Of a stretch of 64,000 bases of DNA, positions 4,391 through 64,000 are shown one piece after another. The DNA lies in assembly GCA_965113315.1 (NCBI GenBank), contig OZ220372.1; one strand, given 5' to 3'. Each line of letters opens with the position of its first letter. Position 1 is the first letter of the stretch. The notes beneath the pieces were generated by a model that had not been told where the DNA came from, ran no database searches, and worked only from the letters and a program-made list of their open reading frames with translations. The position numbers and the translations under genes are program-made. Source of the stretch: Podarcis vaucheri. Its lineage: Eukaryota.

Positions 4391-7103
4391 TACAGACAAA
4401 GAATTGGCAGGTCAATTCAAATCATTATGTAAAATAACCTCATGCCTCCCACTCCTTACTCCCCTCTTTCAATGGTACCATGACTTCTCTTTCTTTCTTC
4501 TTGAGCCTCCCTGCTCTTCACGTACCCTTTCCCTGAATTTCCTTTTCTTAATCTTGCATATTTGGCACCATTCTTTTTGCCACTTTACTTGTTCTCTCCC
4601 CGCCCTAAAGCTTCTCTATCTTTCGAGATTTCTTTTCAGTGCTGAGACTGTCCTGCAAAGCTACTTCTGTCCCTAGGGGCCTATAGGAGGCTTAGATTAA
4701 GCCCAGCTTTTTTCATTTCCACACAGTACAAAAATTCCAACAGCTTTGTTCCCTAAGCATTTGGAATGTTTACGGACTTACCCTGCTATTACAACAGATT
4801 AACTGGTTGGTTATCAAATGCTTCACTGTCCTAAGTGCAATATGATATAGATTTTATTAGGGCAAATTTGTACCAAGTTCTGCAGCGTTTGGGGAGAGAA
4901 CATAAACTATGATATGACAACCCACTGTATGCTTTTATTGCATGGCACAGTTTTACAGCAGTGAATTTCTGGAGAATATATATTATAAGGGGTTAAGAAG
5001 TCATTTTAAAGCTGGGGTCCTGAATTCCAGGTTAAACAGTTGGGATGTCCATTTATAACTTTGGTCTTGGAGCTGTCCTGTTGCCTGCTATGTCTGAGGA
5101 CACTTACTTACCTCCTGTTATTGATATCTCGCTTCCTTTAGCCTCAAGGCTTGCTTTGACAGCTTCAAAACATTAGCATGCAGTGCTAATCTGACCACCC
5201 TCCTAAACGTGTGCATGGAAGTGGAGCTAAAGTAGATGATATACAAAGTGGCTATCTGCCTTTTCCTTTTACAAGGTGAACCTTGAGGTTAAGTAGGCTT
5301 TTCAGTGGCTGTGGGCAGCTAAGCCATAAAGGAGGATTAGAACTTCAGTGTGTCTTGCTTCACTAAGTATGATTAACGGATGGTAGATGTTTGTGCATGC
5401 TGACTTCCAACACTGAAACAGCAATTTATGGCCAGCTCGGTAAGTAAGGCATATTTACATGAGTTTGCATGAAAAATTCATGGAACACTAATAATAGAGC
5501 TTTGACTATCTTGCAAAATTCACCCACCAAACATCGAGAAAGATGGCTGATTCCTAATCTACAGGAAAGAAAACCAACTTCAGGTCTGACTAGGACAACC
5601 AGTGGAGACTTCTTGGTTCTTTTATAGTTATCTTTGGGATTTAAAATGTGGTGGGGCCACTGCAAGAATATCCCTCCCTGCACCGTACTCATCACTAAGT
5701 TGGTAGAAGTTTGGGATTTTCCTGGGGACCGGCACTGAATAGCAGTTCAGAAAAGAATAACAACTGGCTTCATTTACACCATGTGATAAAATGTCAAAAA
5801 GTACTGTTTTATATTTTCATCTTGCATGAAGAGATAAAAGGTACAACACACTTCAATGAAAGCTCACACTGCTGTGGGAATTGGGACTCCCTTGTTTGTG
5901 AAGCCTGAAGGAAATAAGGAACAGCCAAGAAAATCTGCAGCCCAAACTAGTGGGATAGCTGATGAAGAGTCAGATTTAAAATTAGCTTTGCATTACAGAA
6001 AGAGTTGTGCTACAGGGACATTCTTAACATATAAAATAGTTTTTCGTCTGCAGTATAAAGAGTCAATTTGTTAAGTTGTTCAATGAAATCATCTAGTGTT
6101 TTTCCACTTCTTAGCAGATGTTAATATACATTTTTTCTTCTTCTTCTTATAAAATGGTTATACTGCTTAATGCCATAAAAATCTCTACATAAGTTACATC
6201 AGTTCTGAGACATCATAATTTGTTACCAGTTCATTTCTGAACACTGATTCAAAGTGCTGGGTTTGACCTTTAAACTCTACAAGGCTTATGCCTTGTCTTA
6301 GTAAATGCCGTTCCCCACCCCAGGTGTGAAATTGATCAAGAGGAGCCCATTTCCATTGCCACATTTCAAGGAGCTGAAAATTTCTTTCCCCCTTTTTTGG
6401 TTTGTGGCTTTAGAATCCAGAATATTCATTTAAGTGTATTGTTTGCCTTACTTTGAACTGTATTTTCAAACATGTTTTATAATTATGTGCAGATTTTTTT
6501 TTATAAAAAAAAACTGGTTTATTTTTACACACAGCCCCTTAGGAACCACTAAGTTAAAAACAATACTCTTATAGTCAGTCAAATTTGGCATGGTTGCTGA
6601 TGTATATTTCTGAATCAAACAAGAGAGATTCAAGTGAAACAGTCCTGCTATGTTAAGATTGCAATCTTACTCACAGTTACATGGCAGTAAGCCCTATTAA
6701 ACAAAGTGGAACTTGATTCTGTAAATATGCACAGCTAAGGAAACTCTTGCAGAAAAATCCATGTGAACAAGCCGCTTGTACCACATATTTTCACATGAAT
6801 TTGCCCATGGGAATGGCTTTCTTTCAGCACCTTCTTCTTCCAGCATCAGAGGTTTGTGAATTTGATTTTAATTAGAGTATGTTATACTGTGTATAAATGC
6901 ATATCTGGGAACAAAAGATAATGATGTGAGTTTTTCACTGTCATATTAATTTCAGCAGAACATGGATGCTCTCAGCCTTAATTTAGGACTGAAATAAAAA
7001 TTTGTACTGATTTCTTTATTGCTTCTTTCTATATGCATTTTTGTTTCTCACTTCTCTTCTAAATTCACAAACATTTTGTTTCCAAACCTATGTTTACAAA
7101 TAC

Positions 7104-38707: not shown

Positions 38708-39062
38708 TATTGTTGTTGCTGGCATCCATCTGCCTCAAGAGACAATGGAAGAATGTGCCATTGGGGGTAAAGTCAAACCGTTGGAGAGTTACAGTGCCTG
38801 CTGTGGCTGTAGGGACCAGACATGGGAGAGACATGTTTTATTGCAGCTGGGGCAGATGAAGCTCACCATCAATTGAAAGGTTGTTGGTTATGGTGGAGCG
38901 CAGGTGGAACAAATTGTCTGCCACCTCAAGAGCATGGTCACCAAAGCTGATGCATCTTGACAACGTCTTGACCCAAGATGTTGGTCTTCATCAGGCTGAT
39001 GGTGAGGCCGAACTCCATGCAGCCTTAGGCAAAATGGTTGAAGAGTTTCTGCTTCTGCATCT
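38708..39062 (-). mobile_element. RTE-clade LINE fragment (RT end joined to 3' terminus)
   Basis: Minus strand gives EFGLTISLMKTNILGQDV (38955-39010), a decayed C-terminal CNKTCLS motif and a (CAA)n tail at 38710-38718. Confidence 0.7.
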
Positions 39063-43801: not shown

Positions 43802-43996
43802 GGGGAGGGTCATAGCTCAGTGGTAGAACACTTGCCTTGCATACAGAAGGTCCCAGGTTGAATCCCTGGTATCTCCAAATAGGGCTGCAGAAGACTCCCT
43901 TCCTGGAACCCTGGAGAGCCGCTGCTAGTACTTAGTTAGATGGACCAGTGATCTGGTCTTAGTTAGATGGACCAGTGACATAGGAACAGCTTCCTG
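43802..43996 (+). mobile_element. tRNA-derived SINE (decayed)
   Basis: A box TAGCTCAGTGG, B-box-like GGTTGAATCCC, tail tagatggaccagtga...cagcttcct. Related pieces near 26180-26240 and 35095-35176. Confidence 0.7.
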
Positions 43997-55358: not shown

Positions 55359-55405
55359 AGACACCCCGACTCTTACACGGGAAGACACCCGAAGACACCA
55401 AAACC

Positions 55406-55410
<5 letters not shown>
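55359..55410 (+). mobile_element. 52-bp inverted fragment of the PLE 5' region
   Basis: Exact reverse complement of 55473-55524. Confidence 0.95.

Positions 55411-55444
<34 letters not shown>
55409..55444. repeat. (AT)n tract between two PLE 3' ends
   Basis: Direct reading. Confidence 0.95.
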
Positions 55445-55446
<2 letters not shown>

Positions 55447-55526
55447 TTTCGTAGATTTTCACGGGTACAGGAATGCAGGTTTTGGTGTCTTCGGGTGTCT
55501 TCCCGTGTAAGAGTCGGGGTGTCTGG

Positions 55527-55564
55527 GCGACGTTTCGACGAGGTCTCACTCGTCATCTTCAGGC
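55527..55564 (-). ncRNA. Minimal type I hammerhead ribozyme motif (3'-most copy)
   Basis: gc-CUGAAGA-U-GACGAG-ugagac-CUCGUC-GAAACGUC^gc: conserved core, 6-bp helix II, palindromic ACGU in place of helix III; helix I only 2 bp by eye. Confidence 0.75.
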
Positions 55565-55619
55565 TGGTGCTTTCGGCTTCTTGTTACTGGAACAGAGCAG
55601 AATCTGGTGTTTGAGTTCC

Positions 55620-55627
55620 TATAAATA
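55620..55627. promoter_or_regulatory. TATA-like box in the PLE spacer (also 58581-58588, 61542-61549)
   Basis: TATAAATA (+) / TATTTATA (-), 64 nt upstream of the ORF ATG in every unit. Confidence 0.45.
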
Positions 55628-55796
55628 CTGTTGAGGGGTGTGGTGTATAGCCTCCAACGTTCTGGGCAGAGAGGAAGTTCCTAGATTAGTGTGCCTTTTC
55701 TTCTTTTGTTCCTTAATTACTTGAGGGATATCTTGAGTGATTTCATGAGTGATATTCTGAATACCATTGGGTGGGTCATTAAGTGTAGATTAGTTG

Positions 55797-58517
55797 CTAA
55801 AGCTTTCGTGTCTTGACCTCTTGAGCTTGTGAAGAGTTTTTCTGAGAAGATGGCTGTGCTGCATTTAGTTGTGCTCTGGCTTGGCTTCGTGTATAGGGGC
55901 GAGCTGTAATTTTGTGCCTTGTGCCAGCCAGATCTGTGTAGGGATTGCAGGGGGGTGCAGCATCCGGAGGTGCCACTATAGTTTGGCTACTGGATGGAGT
56001 CTGTAATATGTCTGTGGAGAGGGTCTGGGTTTGGGTCTGGTGTGGTTGATTGGTGACGGCGTTCTGTGTGCCTCTGGTTCTGGTGTCGGTTTTTGTGGGG
56101 AGGGCTAATTTCCAGATGTCAGGCAGGCGGGACGTGTCGTCACGCTTGTTCATGTTGTGAGGGTGTTTCTCTATCTCGATGGCTTCCATGATTATTCTCT
56201 TGTGGTGATGTTCCATGTTAAAGAGCAATTTGGAATCTGCAAAATTAATTTCGTGTCCTGTTTCTTTCATGTGTTGGAAAAGAGAGGAAGTTTTTTCTTC
56301 TTTTTTGACGGCATTCTTGTGTTCTGCGATACGTGCATTTATTCGTCTGTTTGTTTGTCCAATGTACGTGGCTGGGCAGACTTTGCAGGGTATTTCATAG
56401 ACCCCTTGGTTTTCGAGCTGGATTTTGTCTTTTGGGTTTCTGAGGATATTGGCTATTTTTTGGTTGGTGCAGAAGGCTGTTTTGATATTGTGTTTATGGA
56501 GGATTTTGCTAATTTTGTCTGTAGTGCCCTTGATGTAAGGAAGGAGGGCCATGCCATTGTTTTCTTCTGTGTCTTGGTTTTTGGGGGGTGTTTCTTTTTG
56601 GATTAGCTTCGTAACCTTGTTTTTCTGGTATCCATTGGCGATTAACACATTTGAGAGATTCTGTAACTCAGTTGTCAAGTGGTCTTTGTCAGCCAGGCGT
56701 TTGGTTCTGGAGATGAGAGTCTTGGCTACGGAGTTTATTTGTGCAGGGTGGTGGTGTGATTGTGCATGTAAGTAGCGGTTGGTGTGTGTTTTTTTCCGGT
56801 AGATAGTGTGTCCTAGGGAGCCATCAGGTTTTTTGTAGATTAGGACGTCAAGAAAGGGGAGTTGGTTGTTGTCTTCTATTTCCATAGTGAATTGTATTTT
56901 GGGGTGTAGACTGTTGAGATGTGTGAGGAAGCTATCTAGTTTTTCTTTCCCGTGTGGCCAAATTACAAAGGTGTCGTCAACATATCTGAGCCAAAGTTTG
57001 GGTTTGTGTTCTGACTTGTCTAAAGCATTGGTTTCAAAGTGTTCCATGTACAAATTTGCGATGACCGGTGAGAGGGGTGATCCCATAGGTGCTCCTTCTA
57101 TCTGTTTGTATCTTTGTCCATTGTGGATGAAGTACGTGTTGGTTAGGCAGTGGTTGGTCAGGTCCAGAATGTATTTGGGGGGATTGTATTTGTTTTGAAT
57201 GGCTGTCAAGGCTTCATTAATGGGCACTTGAGTGAAGAGAGATACAACATCGAAGCTCACAAGTAGGTCATCGGGATGTAGGTATTGCTTCTTTATTGTT
57301 TCTATGAACTGGAAGGAGTTAGTAACGTGTGAAGCGATGGATTCTGCATAGGGCTGAAGTTGCTTAGCGAGAAATTTAGCGAGATTTTGTAGAGGTGAGC
57401 CTATGGAGCTGACTATTGGTCTGAGTGGTGTTCCTTCTTTGTGTATCTTGGGGAGACCGTAGAGTTTGGGGCATCTGGATGATTTTTCTCTGGGGATGAT
57501 TCTTAGCTGGATTTCTTCACTGATAGGAGAGGCTTTTATTTTGGATTTGGTGGTTTTTTCCAGATAGGTGGTGGGATCTGTTTTTATAGGTTGGTAGGTA
57601 GGGTCTTGGAGTAGATTTGATAGTTTTGCTTGGTAGTCCGATGTGTTCATCACAACAGTGGCGTTGCCTTTGTCTGCTGGGAGAATGATTATGTTGTTGT
57701 CTTTTCTCAGGTTGGTGAGTGCTTTCTGTTCTTCTTTGTGTAAATTGCTTCTGGGTGGTTTGCTGGAGCAGAGGATGTTGGTGACTTCAAGTCTGATTTT
57801 ATTGGCTTCATCTGGGTCGATTTTAGTCAGGCTAGCTTCGACTCCGCATATGATGTTTTCCGTGGGGATGCGTCTCGGGGCGACTGCAAAGTTGAAACCT
57901 TTGGAGAGTACTTTGGTTTCAGTTGGGGTGAGGATCCTGTCTGATATGTTATGTACTGTTTGTTTCATGGGTTGTTGTGGAGGGTGGCTGGGCTTCTGGC
58001 GTTTCTCTAGTTTGTAGAGTTTGTTGGTGTGTCTGTCTGTCTTATGTGAGGTCTCAGTTTCAGCTCTCCAGACGGCTAGTTGTTTGCATTTGTCCCAGAG
58101 TGCAGGGTGGATTTTGTTACATAGTTTGAGGTGAAGAGTGAGCAGATCTTTGTTGGTTTGGTTTAGTAGGTATCTTTTCTTATGTATTTCGTTTCTGATT
58201 AGGGATAGTTCAGTTCGTTTCAGGATCCTTTCGGTAGCTGGGGTTTTAGAGTGGAATTTAAGTTGGAAGCATGTGGGAGTTAAGTTGTTGTCTCGGCATT
58301 TGCGTAGGAACAGGAGATCACATAAGATGGTGGCTCTTCGGATTTCTAGTTTCTCGTAGGTTCTTGTCAGCTGGAAGGTTTCCTCCCCGTAGAGGTGAGA
58401 TATTTGCTTTCGTAGATTTTCACGGGTACAGGAATGCAGGTTTTGGTGTCTTCGGGTGTCTTCCCGTGTAAGAGTCGGGGTGTCTGGGCGACGTTTCGAC
58501 GAGGTCTCACTCGTCAT
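55797..58517 (-). CDS. PLE polyprotein, 906 aa: N-terminal domain, reverse transcriptase, GIY-YIG endonuclease (Penelope/Poseidon type)
   Basis: IILPADKGNATVVM, LYGLPKIHK..PLRPIVS, SFDVVSLFT, GAPMGSPLSP, WLRYVDDTF, LPFLDV, GVYEIPCKVC...YIGQT; no Cys-rich linker between RT and endonuclease. Confidence 0.97.
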   Translation of the reverse strand: MTSETSSKRRPDTPTLTREDTRRHQNLHSCTRENLRKQISHLYGEETFQLTRTYEKLEIRRATILCDLLFLRKCRDNNLTPTCFQLKFHSKTPATERILKRTELSLIRNEIHKKRYLLNQTNKDLLTLHLKLCNKIHPALWDKCKQLAVWRAETETSHKTDRHTNKLYKLEKRQKPSHPPQQPMKQTVHNISDRILTPTETKVLSKGFNFAVAPRRIPTENIICGVEASLTKIDPDEANKIRLEVTNILCSSKPPRSNLHKEEQKALTNLRKDNNIIILPADKGNATVVMNTSDYQAKLSNLLQDPTYQPIKTDPTTYLEKTTKSKIKASPISEEIQLRIIPREKSSRCPKLYGLPKIHKEGTPLRPIVSSIGSPLQNLAKFLAKQLQPYAESIASHVTNSFQFIETIKKQYLHPDDLLVSFDVVSLFTQVPINEALTAIQNKYNPPKYILDLTNHCLTNTYFIHNGQRYKQIEGAPMGSPLSPVIANLYMEHFETNALDKSEHKPKLWLRYVDDTFVIWPHGKEKLDSFLTHLNSLHPKIQFTMEIEDNNQLPFLDVLIYKKPDGSLGHTIYRKKTHTNRYLHAQSHHHPAQINSVAKTLISRTKRLADKDHLTTELQNLSNVLIANGYQKNKVTKLIQKETPPKNQDTEENNGMALLPYIKGTTDKISKILHKHNIKTAFCTNQKIANILRNPKDKIQLENQGVYEIPCKVCPATYIGQTNRRINARIAEHKNAVKKEEKTSSLFQHMKETGHEINFADSKLLFNMEHHHKRIIMEAIEIEKHPHNMNKRDDTSRLPDIWKLALPTKTDTRTRGTQNAVTNQPHQTQTQTLSTDILQTPSSSQTIVAPPDAAPPCNPYTDLAGTRHKITARPYTRSQARAQLNAAQPSSQKNSSQAQEVKTRKL

Positions 58518-58525
58518 CTTCAGGC
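58488..58525 (-). ncRNA. Minimal hammerhead ribozyme motif (middle copy)
   Basis: Identical to 55527-55564. Confidence 0.75.
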
Positions 58526-58757
58526 TGGTGCTTTCGGCTTCTTGTTACTGGAACAGAGCAGAATCTGGTGTTTGAGTTCCTATAAATACTGTTGAGGGGT
58601 GTGGTGTATAGCCTCCAACGTTCTGGGCAGAGAGGAAGTTCCTAGATTAGTGTGCCTTTTCTTCTTTTGTTCCTTAATTACTTGAGGGATATCTTGAGTG
58701 ATTTCATGAGTGATATTCTGAATACCATTGGGTGGGTCATTAAGTGTAGATTAGTTG

Positions 58758-61478
58758 CTAAGGCTTTCGTGTCTTGACCTCTTGAGCTTGTGAAGAGTTT
58801 TTCTGAGAAGATGGCTGTGCTGCATTTAGTTGTGCTCTGGCTTGGCTTCGTGTATAGGGGCGAGCTGTAATTTTGTGCCTTGTGCCAGCCAGATCTGTGT
58901 AGGGATTGCAGGGGGGTGCAGCATCCGGAGGTGCCACTATAGTTTGGCTACTGGATGGAGTCTGTAATATGTCTGTGGAGAGGGTCTGGGTTTGGGTCTG
59001 GTGTGGTTGATTGGTGACGGCGTTCTGTGTGCCTCTGGTTCTGGTGTCGGTTTTTGTGGGGAGGGCTAATTTCCAGATGTCAGGCAGGCGGGACGTGTCG
59101 TCACGCTTGTTCATGTTGTGAGGGTGTTTCTCTATCTCGATGGCTTCCATGATTATTCTCTTGTGGTGATGTTCCATGTTAAAGAGCAATTTGGAATCTG
59201 CAAAATTAATTTCGTGTCCTGTTTCTTTCATGTGTTGGAAAAGAGAGGAAGTTTTTTCTTCTTTTTTGACGGCATTCTTGTGTTCTGCGATACGTGCATT
59301 TATTCGTCTGTTTGTTTGTCCAATGTACGTGGCTGGGCAGACTTTGCAGGGTATTTCATAGACCCCTTGGTTTTCGAGCTGGATTTTGTCTTTTGGGTTT
59401 CTGAGGATATTGGCTATTTTTTGGTTGGTGCAGAAGGCTGTTTTGATATTGTGTTTATGGAGGATTTTGCTAATTTTGTCTGTAGTGCCCTTGATGTAAG
59501 GAAGGAGGGCCATGCCATTGTTTTCTTCTGTGTCTTGGTTTTTGGGGGGTGTTTCTTTTTGGATTAGCTTCGTAACCTTGTTTTTCTGGTATCCATTGGC
59601 GATTAACACATTTGAGAGATTCTGTAACTCAGTTGTCAAGTGGTCTTTGTCAGCCAGGCGTTTGGTTCTGGAGATGAGAGTCTTGGCTACGGAGTTTATT
59701 TGTGCAGGGTGGTGGTGTGATTGTGCATGTAAGTAGCGGTTGGTGTGTGTTTTTTTCCGGTAGATAGTGTGTCCTAGGGAGCCATCAGGTTTTTTGTAGA
59801 TTAGGACGTCAAGAAAGGGGAGTTGGTTGTTGTCTTCTATTTCCATAGTGAATTGTATTTTGGGGTGTAGACTGTTGAGATGTGTGAGGAAGCTATCTAG
59901 TTTTTCTTTCCCGTGTGGCCAAATTACAAAGGTGTCGTCAACATATCTGAGCCAAAGTTTGGGTTTGTGTTCTGACTTGTCTAAAGCATTGGTTTCAAAG
60001 TGTTCCATGTACAAATTTGCGATGACCGGTGAGTGGGGTGATCCCATAGGTGCTCCTTCTATCTGTTTGTATCTTTGTCCATTGTGGATGAAGTACGTGT
60101 TGGTTAGGCAGTGGTTGGTCAGGTCCAGAATGTATTTGGGGGGATTGTATTTGTTTTGAATGGCTGTCAAGGCTTCATTAATGGGCACTTGAGTGAAGAG
60201 AGATACAACATCGAAGCTCACAAGTAGGTCATCGGGATGTAGGTATTGCTTCTTTATTGTTTCTATGAACTGGAAGGAGTTAGTAACGTGTGAAGCGATG
60301 GATTCTGCATAGGGCTGAAGTTGCTTAGCGAGAAATTTAGCGAGATTTTGTAGAGGTGAGCCTATGGAGCTGACTATTGGTCTGAGTGGTGTTCCTTCTT
60401 TGTGTATCTTGGGGAGACCGTAGAGTTTGGGGCATCTGGATGATTTTTCTCTGGGGATGATTCTTAGCTGGATTTCTTCACTGATAGGAGAGGCTTTTAT
60501 TTTGGATTTGGTGGTTTTTTCCAGATAGGTGGTGGGATCTGTTTTTATAGGTTGGTAGGTAGGGTCTTGGAGTAGATTTGATAGTTTTGCTTGGTAGTCC
60601 GATGTGTTCATCACAACAGTGGCGTTGCCTTTGTCTGCTGGGAGAATGATTATGTTGTTGTCTTTTCTCAGGTTGGTGAGTGCTTTCTGTTCTTCTTTGT
60701 GTAAATTGCTTCTGGGTGGTTTGCTGGAGCAGAGGATGTTGGTGACTTCAAGTCTGATTTTATTGGCTTCATCTGGGTCGATTTTAGTCAGGCTAGCTTC
60801 GACTCCGCATATGATGTTTTCCGTGGGGATGCGTCTCGGGGCGACTGCAAAGTTGAAACCTTTGGAGAGTACTTTGGTTTCAGTTGGGGTGAGGATCCTG
60901 TCTGATATGTTATGTACTGTTTGTTTCATGGGTTGTTGTGGAGGGTGGCTGGGCTTCTGGCGTTTCTCTAGTTTGTAGAGTTTGTTGGTGTGTCTGTCTG
61001 TCTTATGTGAGGTCTCAGTTTCAGCTCTCCAGACGGCTAGTTGTTTGCATTTGTCCCAGAGTGCAGGGTGGATTTTGTTACATAGTTTGAGGTGAAGAGT
61101 GAGCAGATCTTTGTTGGTTTGGTTTAGTAGGTATCTTTTCTTATGTATTTCGTTTCTGATTAGGGATAGTTCAGTTCGTTTCAGGATCCTTTCGGTAGCT
61201 GGGGTTTTAGAGTGGAATTTAAGTTGGAAGCATGTGGGAGTTAAGTTGTTGTCTCGGCATTTGCGTAGGAACAGGAGATCACATAAGATGGTGGCTCTTC
61301 GGATTTCTAGTTTCTCGTAGGTTCTTGTCAGCTGGAAGGTTTCCTCCCCGTAGAGGTGAGATATTTGCTTTCGTAGATTTTCACGGGTACAGGAATGCAG
61401 GTTTTGGTGTCTTCGGGTGTCTTCCCGTGTAAGAGTCGGGGTGTCTGGGCGACGTTTCGACGAGGTCTCACTCGTCAT
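58758..61478 (-). CDS. PLE polyprotein, 906 aa, second tandem copy
   Basis: Same protein except GSPLSP to GSPHSP (nt 60034) and terminal L to P (nt 58762). Confidence 0.97.
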   Translation of the reverse strand: MTSETSSKRRPDTPTLTREDTRRHQNLHSCTRENLRKQISHLYGEETFQLTRTYEKLEIRRATILCDLLFLRKCRDNNLTPTCFQLKFHSKTPATERILKRTELSLIRNEIHKKRYLLNQTNKDLLTLHLKLCNKIHPALWDKCKQLAVWRAETETSHKTDRHTNKLYKLEKRQKPSHPPQQPMKQTVHNISDRILTPTETKVLSKGFNFAVAPRRIPTENIICGVEASLTKIDPDEANKIRLEVTNILCSSKPPRSNLHKEEQKALTNLRKDNNIIILPADKGNATVVMNTSDYQAKLSNLLQDPTYQPIKTDPTTYLEKTTKSKIKASPISEEIQLRIIPREKSSRCPKLYGLPKIHKEGTPLRPIVSSIGSPLQNLAKFLAKQLQPYAESIASHVTNSFQFIETIKKQYLHPDDLLVSFDVVSLFTQVPINEALTAIQNKYNPPKYILDLTNHCLTNTYFIHNGQRYKQIEGAPMGSPHSPVIANLYMEHFETNALDKSEHKPKLWLRYVDDTFVIWPHGKEKLDSFLTHLNSLHPKIQFTMEIEDNNQLPFLDVLIYKKPDGSLGHTIYRKKTHTNRYLHAQSHHHPAQINSVAKTLISRTKRLADKDHLTTELQNLSNVLIANGYQKNKVTKLIQKETPPKNQDTEENNGMALLPYIKGTTDKISKILHKHNIKTAFCTNQKIANILRNPKDKIQLENQGVYEIPCKVCPATYIGQTNRRINARIAEHKNAVKKEEKTSSLFQHMKETGHEINFADSKLLFNMEHHHKRIIMEAIEIEKHPHNMNKRDDTSRLPDIWKLALPTKTDTRTRGTQNAVTNQPHQTQTQTLSTDILQTPSSSQTIVAPPDAAPPCNPYTDLAGTRHKITARPYTRSQARAQLNAAQPSSQKNSSQAQEVKTRKP

Positions 61479-61486
61479 CTTCAGGC
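61449..61486 (-). ncRNA. Minimal hammerhead ribozyme motif (5'-most copy)
   Basis: Identical to 55527-55564. Confidence 0.75.
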
Positions 61487-62015
61487 TGGTGCTTTCGGCT
61501 TCTTGTTACTGGAACAGAGCAGAATCTGGTGTTTGAGTTCCTATAAATACTGTTGAGGGGTGTGGTGTATAGCCTCCAACGTTCTGGGCAGAGAGGAAGT
61601 TCCTAGATTAGTGTGCCTTTTCTTCTTTTGTTCCTTAATTACTTGAGGGATATCTTGAGTGATTTCATGAGTGATATTCTGAATACCATTGGGTGGGTCA
61701 TTAAGTGTAGATTAGTTGCTAAAGCTTTCGTGTCTTGACCTCTTGAGCTTGTGAAGAGTTTTTCTGAGAAGATGGCTGTGCTGCATTTAGTTGTGCTCTG
61801 GCTTGGCTTCGTGTATAGGGGCGAGCTGTAATTTTGTGCCTTGTGCCAGCCAGATCTGTGTAGGGATTGCAGGGGGGTGCAGCATCCGGAGGTGCCACTA
61901 TAGTTTGGCTACTGGATGGAGTCTGTAATATGTCTGTGGAGAGGGTCTGGGTTTGGGTCTGGTGTGGTTGATTGGTGACGGCGTTCTGTGTGCCTCTGGT
62001 TCTGGTTCTGGTTCT

Positions 62016-63916
62016 ACAACATAATCATTCTCCCAGCAGACAAAGGCAACGCCACTGTTGTGATGAACACATCGGACTACCAAGCAAAACTATCAAATCT
62101 ACTCCAAGACCCTACCTACCAACCTATAAAAACAGATCCCACCACCTATCTGGAAAAAACCACCAAATCCAAAATAAAAGCCTCTCCTATCAGTGAAGAA
62201 ATCCAGCTAAGAATCATCCCCAGAGAAAAATCATCCAGATGCCCCAAACTCTACGGTCTCCCCAAGATACACAAAGAAGGAACACCACTCAGACCAATAG
62301 TCAGCTCCATAGGCTCACCTCTACAAAATCTCGCTAAATTTCTCGCTAAGCAACTTCAGCCCTATGCAGAATCCATCGCTTCACACGTTACTAACTCCTT
62401 CCAGTTCATAGAAACAATAAAGAAGCAATACCTACATCCCGATGACCTACTTGTGAGCTTCGATGTTGTATCTCTCTTCACTCAAGTGCCCATTAATGAA
62501 GCCTTGACAGCCATTCAAAACAAATACAACCCCCCCAAATACATCCTGGACCTGACCAACCACTGCCTAACCAACACGTACTTCATCCACAATGGACAAA
62601 GATACAAACAGATAGAAGGAGCACCTATGGGATCACCCCTCTCACCGGTCATCGCAAATTTGTACATGGAACACTTTGAAACCAATGCTTTAGACAAGTC
62701 AGAACACAAACCCAAACTTTGGCTCAGATATGTTGACGACACCTTTGTAATTTGGCCACACGGGAAAGAAAAACTAGATAGCTTCCTCACACATCTCAAC
62801 AGCCTACACCCCAAAATACAATTCACTATGGAAATAGAAGACAACAACCAACTCCCCTTTCTTGACGTCCTAATCTACAAAAAACCTGATGGCTCCCTAG
62901 GACACACTATCTACCGGAAAAAAACACACACCAACCGCTACTTACATGCACAATCACACCACCACCCTGCACAAATAAACTCCGTAGCCAAGACTCTCAT
63001 CTCCAGAACCAAACGCCTGGCTGACAAAGACCACTTGACAACTGAGTTACAGAATCTCTCAAATGTGTTAATCGCCAATGGATACCAGAAAAACAGGGTT
63101 ACGAAGCTAATCCAAAAAGAAACACCCCCCAAAAACCAAGACACAGAAGAAAACAATGGCATGGCCCTCCTTCCTTATATCAAGGGCACTACAGACAAAA
63201 TCAGCAAAATCCTCCATAAACACAATATCAAAACAGCCTTCTGCACCAACCAAAAAATAGCCAATATCCTCAGAAACCCAAAAGACAAAATCCAGCTGGA
63301 AAACCAAGGGGTCTATGAAATACCCTGCAAAGTCTGCCCAGCCACGTACATTGGACAAACAAACAGACGAATAAATGCACGTATCGCAGAACACAAGAAT
63401 GCCGTCAAAAAAGAAGAAAAAACTTCCTCTCTTTTCCAACACATGAAAGAAACAGGACACGAAATTAATTTTGCAGATTCCAAATTGCTCTTTAACATGG
63501 AACATCACCACAAGAGAATAATCATGGAAGCCATCGAGATAGAGAAACACCCTCACAACATGAACAAGCGTGACGACACGTCCCGCCTGCCAGACATCTG
63601 GAAATTAGCCCTCCCCACAAAAACCGACACCAGAACCAGAGGCACACAGAACGCCGTCACCAATCAACCACACCAGACCCAAACCCAGACCCTCTCCACA
63701 GACATATTACAGACTCCATCCAGTAGCCAAACTATAGTGGCACCTCCGGATGCTGCACCCCCCTGCAATCCCTACACAGATCTGGCTGGCACAAGGCACA
63801 AAACCACAGCTCGCCCCTATACACGAAGCCAAGCCAGAGCACAACTAAATGCAGCACAGCCATCTTCTCAGAAAAACTCTTCACAAGCTCAAGAGGTCAA
63901 GACACGAAAGCTTTAG
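62016..63916 (+). pseudogene. 5'-truncated but uninterrupted PLE RT + GIY-YIG reading frame
   Basis: Starts at NIIILPADKG and keeps all RT and endonuclease motifs; lacks the first ~274 aa, promoter and native ATG. Confidence 0.85.
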
Positions 63917-64000
63917 CAACTAATCTACACTTAATGACCCACCCAATGGTATTCAGAATATCACTCATGAAATCACTCAAGATATCCCTCAAGTAATTAA
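62016..64000 (+). mobile_element. 5'-truncated inverted PLE copy, running off the window end
   Basis: Reverse complement of 58674-60658 with about 10 substitutions. Confidence 0.96.

Follow-up and report, generated by a model that had tools for sequence, protein, structure and literature searches.

A predicted hammerhead ribozyme across the start codon of a Penelope-like retrotransposon in the lizard Podarcis vaucheri

What becomes of a messenger RNA whose only usable start codon lies inside a ribozyme that is predicted to cut it away from the rest of the reading frame? The question is raised by a stretch of 64,000 nucleotides from Podarcis vaucheri (assembly GCA_965113315.1, contig OZ220372.1), referred to here as the window, whose minus strand carries a Penelope-like element (PLE) in head-to-tail units. 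The open reading frame (ORF) of each full unit encodes 906 amino acids and starts within the core of a minimal hammerhead ribozyme (min-HHR), as an annotation made from the letters alone, termed here the original prediction, had noticed. We put at about one half the probability that cleavage at this site is an off-switch, or dead end, assisted by the protein and probably requiring a dimer, and not a step that makes the template for retrotransposition.

The candidate ribozyme is present in three identical copies, all on the minus strand, namely, at 61451..61484, with a cut predicted between 61451 and 61450; at 58490..58523, on the junction of the two full units; and at 55529..55562, in the terminal partial unit. 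Each copy reads CUGAAGA-U-GACGAG-UGAGAC-CUCGUC-GAAACGUC, which breaks down into the CUGAAGA core, a bulged U, a helix II of 6 bp (GACGAG/CUCGUC), GAAA, an ACGU palindrome and C17, and which had no chance match in 100 shuffles. First, the catalytic core C3-U4-G5-A6-N7-G8-A9...G12-A13-A14...A15.1/U16.1-H17 is complete in the three copies (CUGAAGA...GAAA-CG-UC). Second, the single unpaired U before G10.1 and the G10.1-C11.1 pair are those expected of PLE-type hammerheads, and the minimal helix III with its ACGU palindrome is that expected of the dimer type. Third, helix I has only 2 bp (GC/GC), against an expectation of about 3-5 bp for the PLE type.

To evaluate this assignment, we used a descriptor consisting of CUGANGA, one bulged nucleotide, G10.1, helix II, GAAA, a palindrome (cg/cgcg/catg/gc) and UH. 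In the window it retrieved only the three PLE sites, with a mean of 0.1 matches per shuffle in 100 dinucleotide shuffles, and among 80 PLE loci from metagenome contigs 28 proved to have motifs built alike. Under a covariance model, R1, built from 22 PLE hammerheads from outside the window, the three sites reached a score of 28.9 bits (E about 7e-7, a rough value) and the next match 14.5 bits; at the window sites the match took in only the innermost pair of helix I. When 23 hammerheads were aligned, 94.8% of the helix II cells and 77% of the helix I cells were paired, compensatory changes were seen at all four pairs of helix I, and neither any of 500 shuffles nor any slid register approached the observed helix pairing. 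Because helix II pairing was built into the descriptor, helix I is the sole independent signal of covariation. The Rfam hammerhead models gave no match in the window even at E<=10; since they also miss every min-HHR in 12 control PLE loci, this negative is uninformative. Compared with shuffles, folding energies were unremarkable, with z = -0.45 over the monomer region and 0.22 over nt 29-179, so that support for the motif comes from its core, the covariation and the model, and not from the fold. Judged by these sequence comparisons, the window motif is a genuine PLE minimal hammerhead.

Elsewhere in the window, at 38955-39001 on the minus strand, there is a decayed hammerhead-like relic, cagcCUGAUGA-A-GACC...GGUC-AAGACGUU, in which GAAA is mutated. 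With R1 it reaches 14.5 bits (E 0.047); it is probably the remnant of an old PLE pseudo-long terminal repeat (pLTR).

The start codon of the first ORF (61476..61478) is made of A9, the bulged U and G10.1 of the hammerhead, its A being the final A of CUGAAGA, exactly as the original prediction had it. Codons 1-10, MTSETSSKRR, run through the bulged U, helix II and GAAACGUC, and C17 is nt 28 of the ORF, that is, the first base of codon 10, after which the cut is predicted; the same holds at all three sites (61451/61450, 58490/58489 and 55529/55528), in agreement with the placement of the predicted cut proposed earlier. An in-frame TAA (61506..61508) lies 10 codons 5' of the ATG and the next methionine is residue 184, both as previously claimed. 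The purine at position -3, which is A6 of the ribozyme, gives the hammerhead AUG a favourable initiation context. Because a cut after nt 28 would part the sole usable AUG from its ORF, only uncut, or re-joined, RNA could encode the full protein, and the earlier statement that cut linear RNA cannot yield it stands.

This overlap is not new. It has been described for PAc (Poseidon_Ac), an element of Anolis carolinensis (Frangieh et al. 2024, Mob DNA 15:12; PMC11167929), and the window element adds one more case of the published layout. Reading the PAc consensus by eye across the unit junction, we find ...CUGAGG/AUG CCUGCC AUAGAU GUGGGC GAAACGUC^, with a helix II that is different but compensated. 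Both elements have a single ORF with reverse transcriptase (RT) and GIY-YIG domains, tandem units, the CUGANGA-U-G... arrangement followed by GAAACGUC, a short helix I, 3' ends at about nt 85 and nt 111-119, and AT-rich targets. They differ in helix I (2 bp in the window, 3 bp in PAc) and in loop II (6 nt and 7 nt, respectively), and because of this one-nucleotide difference GAAACGUC is read as KRR in the window and as ETS in PAc. The window unit, of 2961 bp, also has a longer C-terminal tail. The two proteins are 45% identical over residues 33-802, in an alignment that starts at residue 33/34; residues 1-32 cannot be aligned, yet their lengths differ by only one amino acid, which is the pattern expected if this stretch were constrained as RNA and not as protein.

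The biochemistry of PAc, the sole experimental study of this layout, frames what the cut may do (PMC11167929). Its RNA is cut 26 nt after the start codon, and cleavage requires the protein. The C3G and G8C mutants lose cleavage and still insert normally, and the C3G/G8C double mutant regains cleavage. The dominant template is unprocessed RNA, which needs the first 172 nt of the ORF, and reverse transcription begins internally, at about nt 85 and nt 111-118. No reads in PAc RNA-seq start or end at the cut, and recombinant protein made from the hammerhead AUG is active.

Other systems resemble the window in part. The PLE hammerheads of Cervera & de la Peña (2014) share with it the type-I topology, the unpaired nucleotide between A9 and G10.1, the G10.1-C11.1 pair, the long helix II, the palindromic minimal helix III, which implies a dimer, and the location in the pLTR, but their helix I is typically of 4-5 bp rather than 2 bp; the text of that article places the motif in the pLTR and nowhere mentions start codon, ATG or AUG. 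Hammerheads are universal in canonical PLEs, and their role in endonuclease-bearing PLEs has been termed unclear (PMC8557442). In the non-LTR retrotransposons R2 and L1Tc (Eickbush 2010 and Ruminski 2011, cited in PMC13725137), ribozymes similar to that of hepatitis delta virus (HDV) occupy the 5' end, and there too a self-cleaving ribozyme beside the ORF start is tied to processing and translation initiation. The HDV-like ribozyme, however, cuts at its own 5' edge and stays with the ORF, whereas the cut of a type-I hammerhead falls close to its 3' edge; in the window the core and the AUG would therefore leave with the upstream fragment. Animal and plant retrozymes also consist of tandem units that each have a hammerhead, with a cleavage-ligation route to circular RNA (circRNA) that may be open to the window element as well; they are small and non-coding, whereas the window unit, of 2961 nt, encodes its own RT and endonuclease.

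An ATG at the hammerhead position in related families, which the original prediction had named as a point to be checked, was found in PAc and, at the DNA level, in four further families, represented by metagenome loci (L008, L012, L013 and L046), whose proteins are about 40-46% identical to that of the window. Since KRR and ETS are two in-frame readings of GAAACGU, the layout can also be followed in proteins as M-x6-(KRR or ETS), 33-39 aa before LYGE; this signature is present in at least nine families (P0003, P0006, P0022, P0023, P0024, P0026, P0027, P0035 and P0036), judged by N-terminal peptides only. In five more distant families (L007, L040, L059, L065 and L038; 28-35% identity) the start of the ORF is past the cut, at 55-122 nt from A9. 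On a tree of the RT domain, families with the signature are interleaved with families that start just before LYGE, with at least six changes, so the trait is old or recurrent, and labile. These sequences suggest that an AUG spelled by A9, U and G10.1 is widespread among Poseidon-type families of vertebrates and invertebrates.

Two of these families have peculiarities of their own. In L046, two PLE copies meet, at 1470-1560, in a perfect fold-back junction within the hammerhead core (...CAUAG C CUAUGAAGAUGG...), as a result of which another in-frame ATG stands two codons ahead of the hammerhead AUG. In L008, at 6594-6654, a second in-frame AUG follows 6 nt past the cut (GUC^GACAAAUG), so that cleaved RNA would retain a start codon; the window element has no counterpart of it.

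The interleaving on the tree also bears on an alternative in which the hammerhead is kept as a folded RNA or a passenger that rarely or never cuts in vivo, and AUG is just what A9, a U bulge and G10.1 happen to spell, which some lineages use as a start. The bulge is a U in about half of the PLE hammerheads, regardless of whether an ORF starts there, and the at least six changes between long N-termini and LYGE starts would be in line with such chance use. Moreover, min-HHRs are weakly active in vitro, PAc RNA-seq lacks ends at the cut (PMC11167929), and Craig et al. have floated hammerheads as parasites of PLEs (PMC8557442). Yet the catalytic core is invariant among families only 30-50% identical in protein, and PAc does cleave with its protein, with activity rescued in the C3G/G8C double mutant (PMC11167929). 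We consider this alternative unlikely.

Even less probable is that translation begins elsewhere, which would make the cut irrelevant to the protein. Codon 27, a near-cognate CUG immediately ahead of the conserved domain, might then serve as the start, or splicing might supply another. Such initiation would agree with the lack of conservation of residues 1-32 as protein, with the many relatives that start just before the ESL..LYGE motif, and with the five families whose ORFs start past the cut. But all families of the window type have a frame that is open from the hammerhead AUG onwards, more than 13 families have a methionine precisely 7 codons ahead of the residues encoded by GAAACGU, and the active recombinant PAc protein was made from the hammerhead AUG (PMC11167929). 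As for splicing, TAA directly follows the only acceptor-like site.

The 240-nt spacer upstream of the ORF does contain splice-like signals (61509-61650, minus strand), namely, CAA/GUAAUU about 170 nt and uuccag/UAA 31 nt 5' of the ATG, and the intron of Penelope in D. virilis ends at helix I. A 5'-UTR (untranslated region) intron between these signals that would move the start codon was rejected on two grounds. Immediately past the acceptor comes the in-frame TAA. In addition, the candidate TATA box of the pLTR promoter, TATTTATA (61542..61549, minus strand), recognized by eye only, 71 nt 5' of the ATG, sits inside this putative intron, so transcripts from that promoter would not contain it.

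How the element was copied can be read in part from the array itself. It spans 55444..62006 (minus strand) and comprises 2.2 head-to-tail units of 2961 bp, a multiple of three, with 3 mismatches between units; the sole differences are at 55801/58762/61723 (A/G/A) and 57073/60034 (A/T). The array ends 3' at nt 113 of the ORF (…GAAAGCA/TATA at 55444), downstream of the cut, so that its terminal unit retains ORF nt 29-113, an AC-rich segment from the cut to the element 3' end (55444..55528, minus strand). Facing it across an (AT)n target tract (55411..55443) is an inverted mini-copy of 52 bp (55359..55410, plus strand), corresponding to ORF nt 33-84, whose 3' end adjoins the same tract; both 3' ends lie at GCA/TA. 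The two ends, at nt 84 and nt 113, correspond to the sites at which reverse transcription starts in PAc, and nt 29-113 to the PAc region that holds these starts and the 'tail'. The RNA behind the 2.2-unit insertion was read back through two internal hammerheads. The mini-copy starts 4 nt after the predicted cut, and is the product expected if a reverse transcriptase that began at nt 84 reached the 5' end of a cleaved RNA and fell off there; it may be a footprint of cleavage in vivo, as a single case.

We note in addition that two PLE 3' ends on one (AT)n tract (55359-55444) fit the two-strand priming reported for PAc. Three AGACACC(C) repeats occur in the AC-rich stretch of ORF nt 33-113 (61366-61446 in the first unit, minus strand), which is situated 3' of the cut and leads up to the two 3'-end sites. 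Visual comparison with the PAc region shows CCCGAA(A)GACA...AACC(C)UG in both, although the encoded peptides are unrelated, and the stretch is reminiscent of the telomeric repeats, (ACACCC)n in reverse complement, of PLEs that lack an endonuclease.

With these data at hand, we propose that uncut RNA would be both the messenger and the template for target-primed reverse transcription, which would begin within ORF nt 84-113 of the downstream unit and then have to traverse an intact hammerhead. The ribozyme, with a 1-bp helix III that needs a dimer and a 2-bp helix I, would be intrinsically weak, and would probably fire only once the element's own dimeric protein binds nt 20-172. A cut at the 5' copy would then remove cap, leader and AUG, and end translation of that RNA. 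At the 3' copy, since the priming sites lie downstream of it, a cut would detach the priming module from the element body, and may yield abortive mini-cDNAs such as the 52-bp copy.

The original prediction had instead offered a switch, in which uncut RNA is the messenger and cut linear RNA the template. Its first half holds, given that only uncut RNA encodes the full protein and that an ORF copy can be either cleaved or translated, not both; its second half is not supported. RNA cut at the 5' site would indeed keep the downstream priming module, but a copy made from it would be devoid of promoter and AUG, and the 5' end of the window array is not at a cut site. A cut at the 3' site removes the priming sites at nt 84 and nt 113, the latter being where the array ends, and ribozyme-dead PAc templates insert normally (PMC11167929). 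This use of cut RNA is quite unlikely in our view, though somewhat less so than initiation away from the hammerhead AUG.

A second option, also raised at the outset, was re-joining. In a fuller form of it, both flanking hammerheads would cut, the 2961-nt unit would be ligated by the reverse hammerhead reaction or by RtcB, and the AUG junction would be restored in a circle whose translation is cap-independent and which templates tandem arrays by rolling-circle copying. The seamless 2.2-unit array with near-identical units is what such a template would leave, although a multi-unit linear transcript accounts for it equally well, and the junction of a circle is identical in sequence to that of a tandem. 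A dimer-type ribozyme would cut two sites simultaneously; PLE circles were proposed in 2014 (PMC4209133), and circles have been shown for non-coding retrozymes. Hammerhead cleavage can permit cap-independent translation in RNA viruses (PMC13725137). On the other side, the TATA-like box 71 nt 5' of the AUG allows an ordinary capped messenger. Finally, PAc RNA-seq is without ends at the cut and the template in vitro is uncut RNA (PMC11167929). Such a coding circle is doubtful.

It is tempting to speculate on a self-limiting circuit, in which newly made PLE protein would bind nt 20-172 of its own RNA as a dimer, unite two hammerheads and trigger the cut, with loss of cap and AUG; or, if both flanking sites were cut, the 2961-nt unit would be ligated into a coding circRNA that restores the AUG and templates rolling-circle reverse transcription into tandem arrays. 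We regard this extended scheme, too, as a long shot.

Several points weigh against cleavage as an off-switch or dead end. With a helix I of 2 bp, the ribozyme of the window element may cleave very little, if at all, and, with helix II pairing demanded by the descriptor, helix I is all that is left as independent covariation. A purely negative role fits poorly with the universal presence of hammerheads in canonical PLEs (PMC8557442). The mini-copy is one case, and its start is 4 nt off the cut. Lastly, the mechanistic data come from PAc in vitro, a relative of 45% identity, whereas for the window element we have the genomic sequence.

The remaining features place the element. The first ORF (58758..61478, minus strand) encodes an N-terminal domain, RVT_1 (E 3.6e-14) and GIY-YIG, the last as a weak match (E 0.0011; 19.7 bits, under the Pfam cut-off of 22.6 bits), and the second (55797..58517, minus strand), also of 906 aa, differs from it by one residue. 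The closest proteins are from Podarcis muralis (96%) and Vipera latastei (82%), with Poseidon P0023 of Anolis carolinensis at 45%; relatives sought in viral contigs were not found. Next to the array, an inverted, 5'-truncated copy that begins at ORF nt 821 leaves the window (62016..64000, plus strand; 12 mismatches in 1985 nt). Partial-tandem (pLTR) organisation, an inverted 5'-truncated neighbour, an AT-rich or microsatellite target and a 3' tail are all present, and the anatomy of the window is standard for a PLE with pLTRs. By its similarity to PAc and to the lizard and snake proteins, the element classes as a young lizard retrotransposon of the Penelope/Poseidon type, with the layout of PAc. 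In addition, at 43806-43877 (plus strand), there is a tRNA-like match of 32.8 bits, just over the Rfam threshold and with several non-canonical pairs, which may be a tRNA-derived repeat.

With both of its full ORFs intact and its units almost identical, this very young element makes a clean second test system beside PAc. At the level of the family, PLEs whose start codon lies inside the hammerhead and those in which it lies beyond the cut amount to a natural experiment on whether translation is under the control of ribozyme cleavage.

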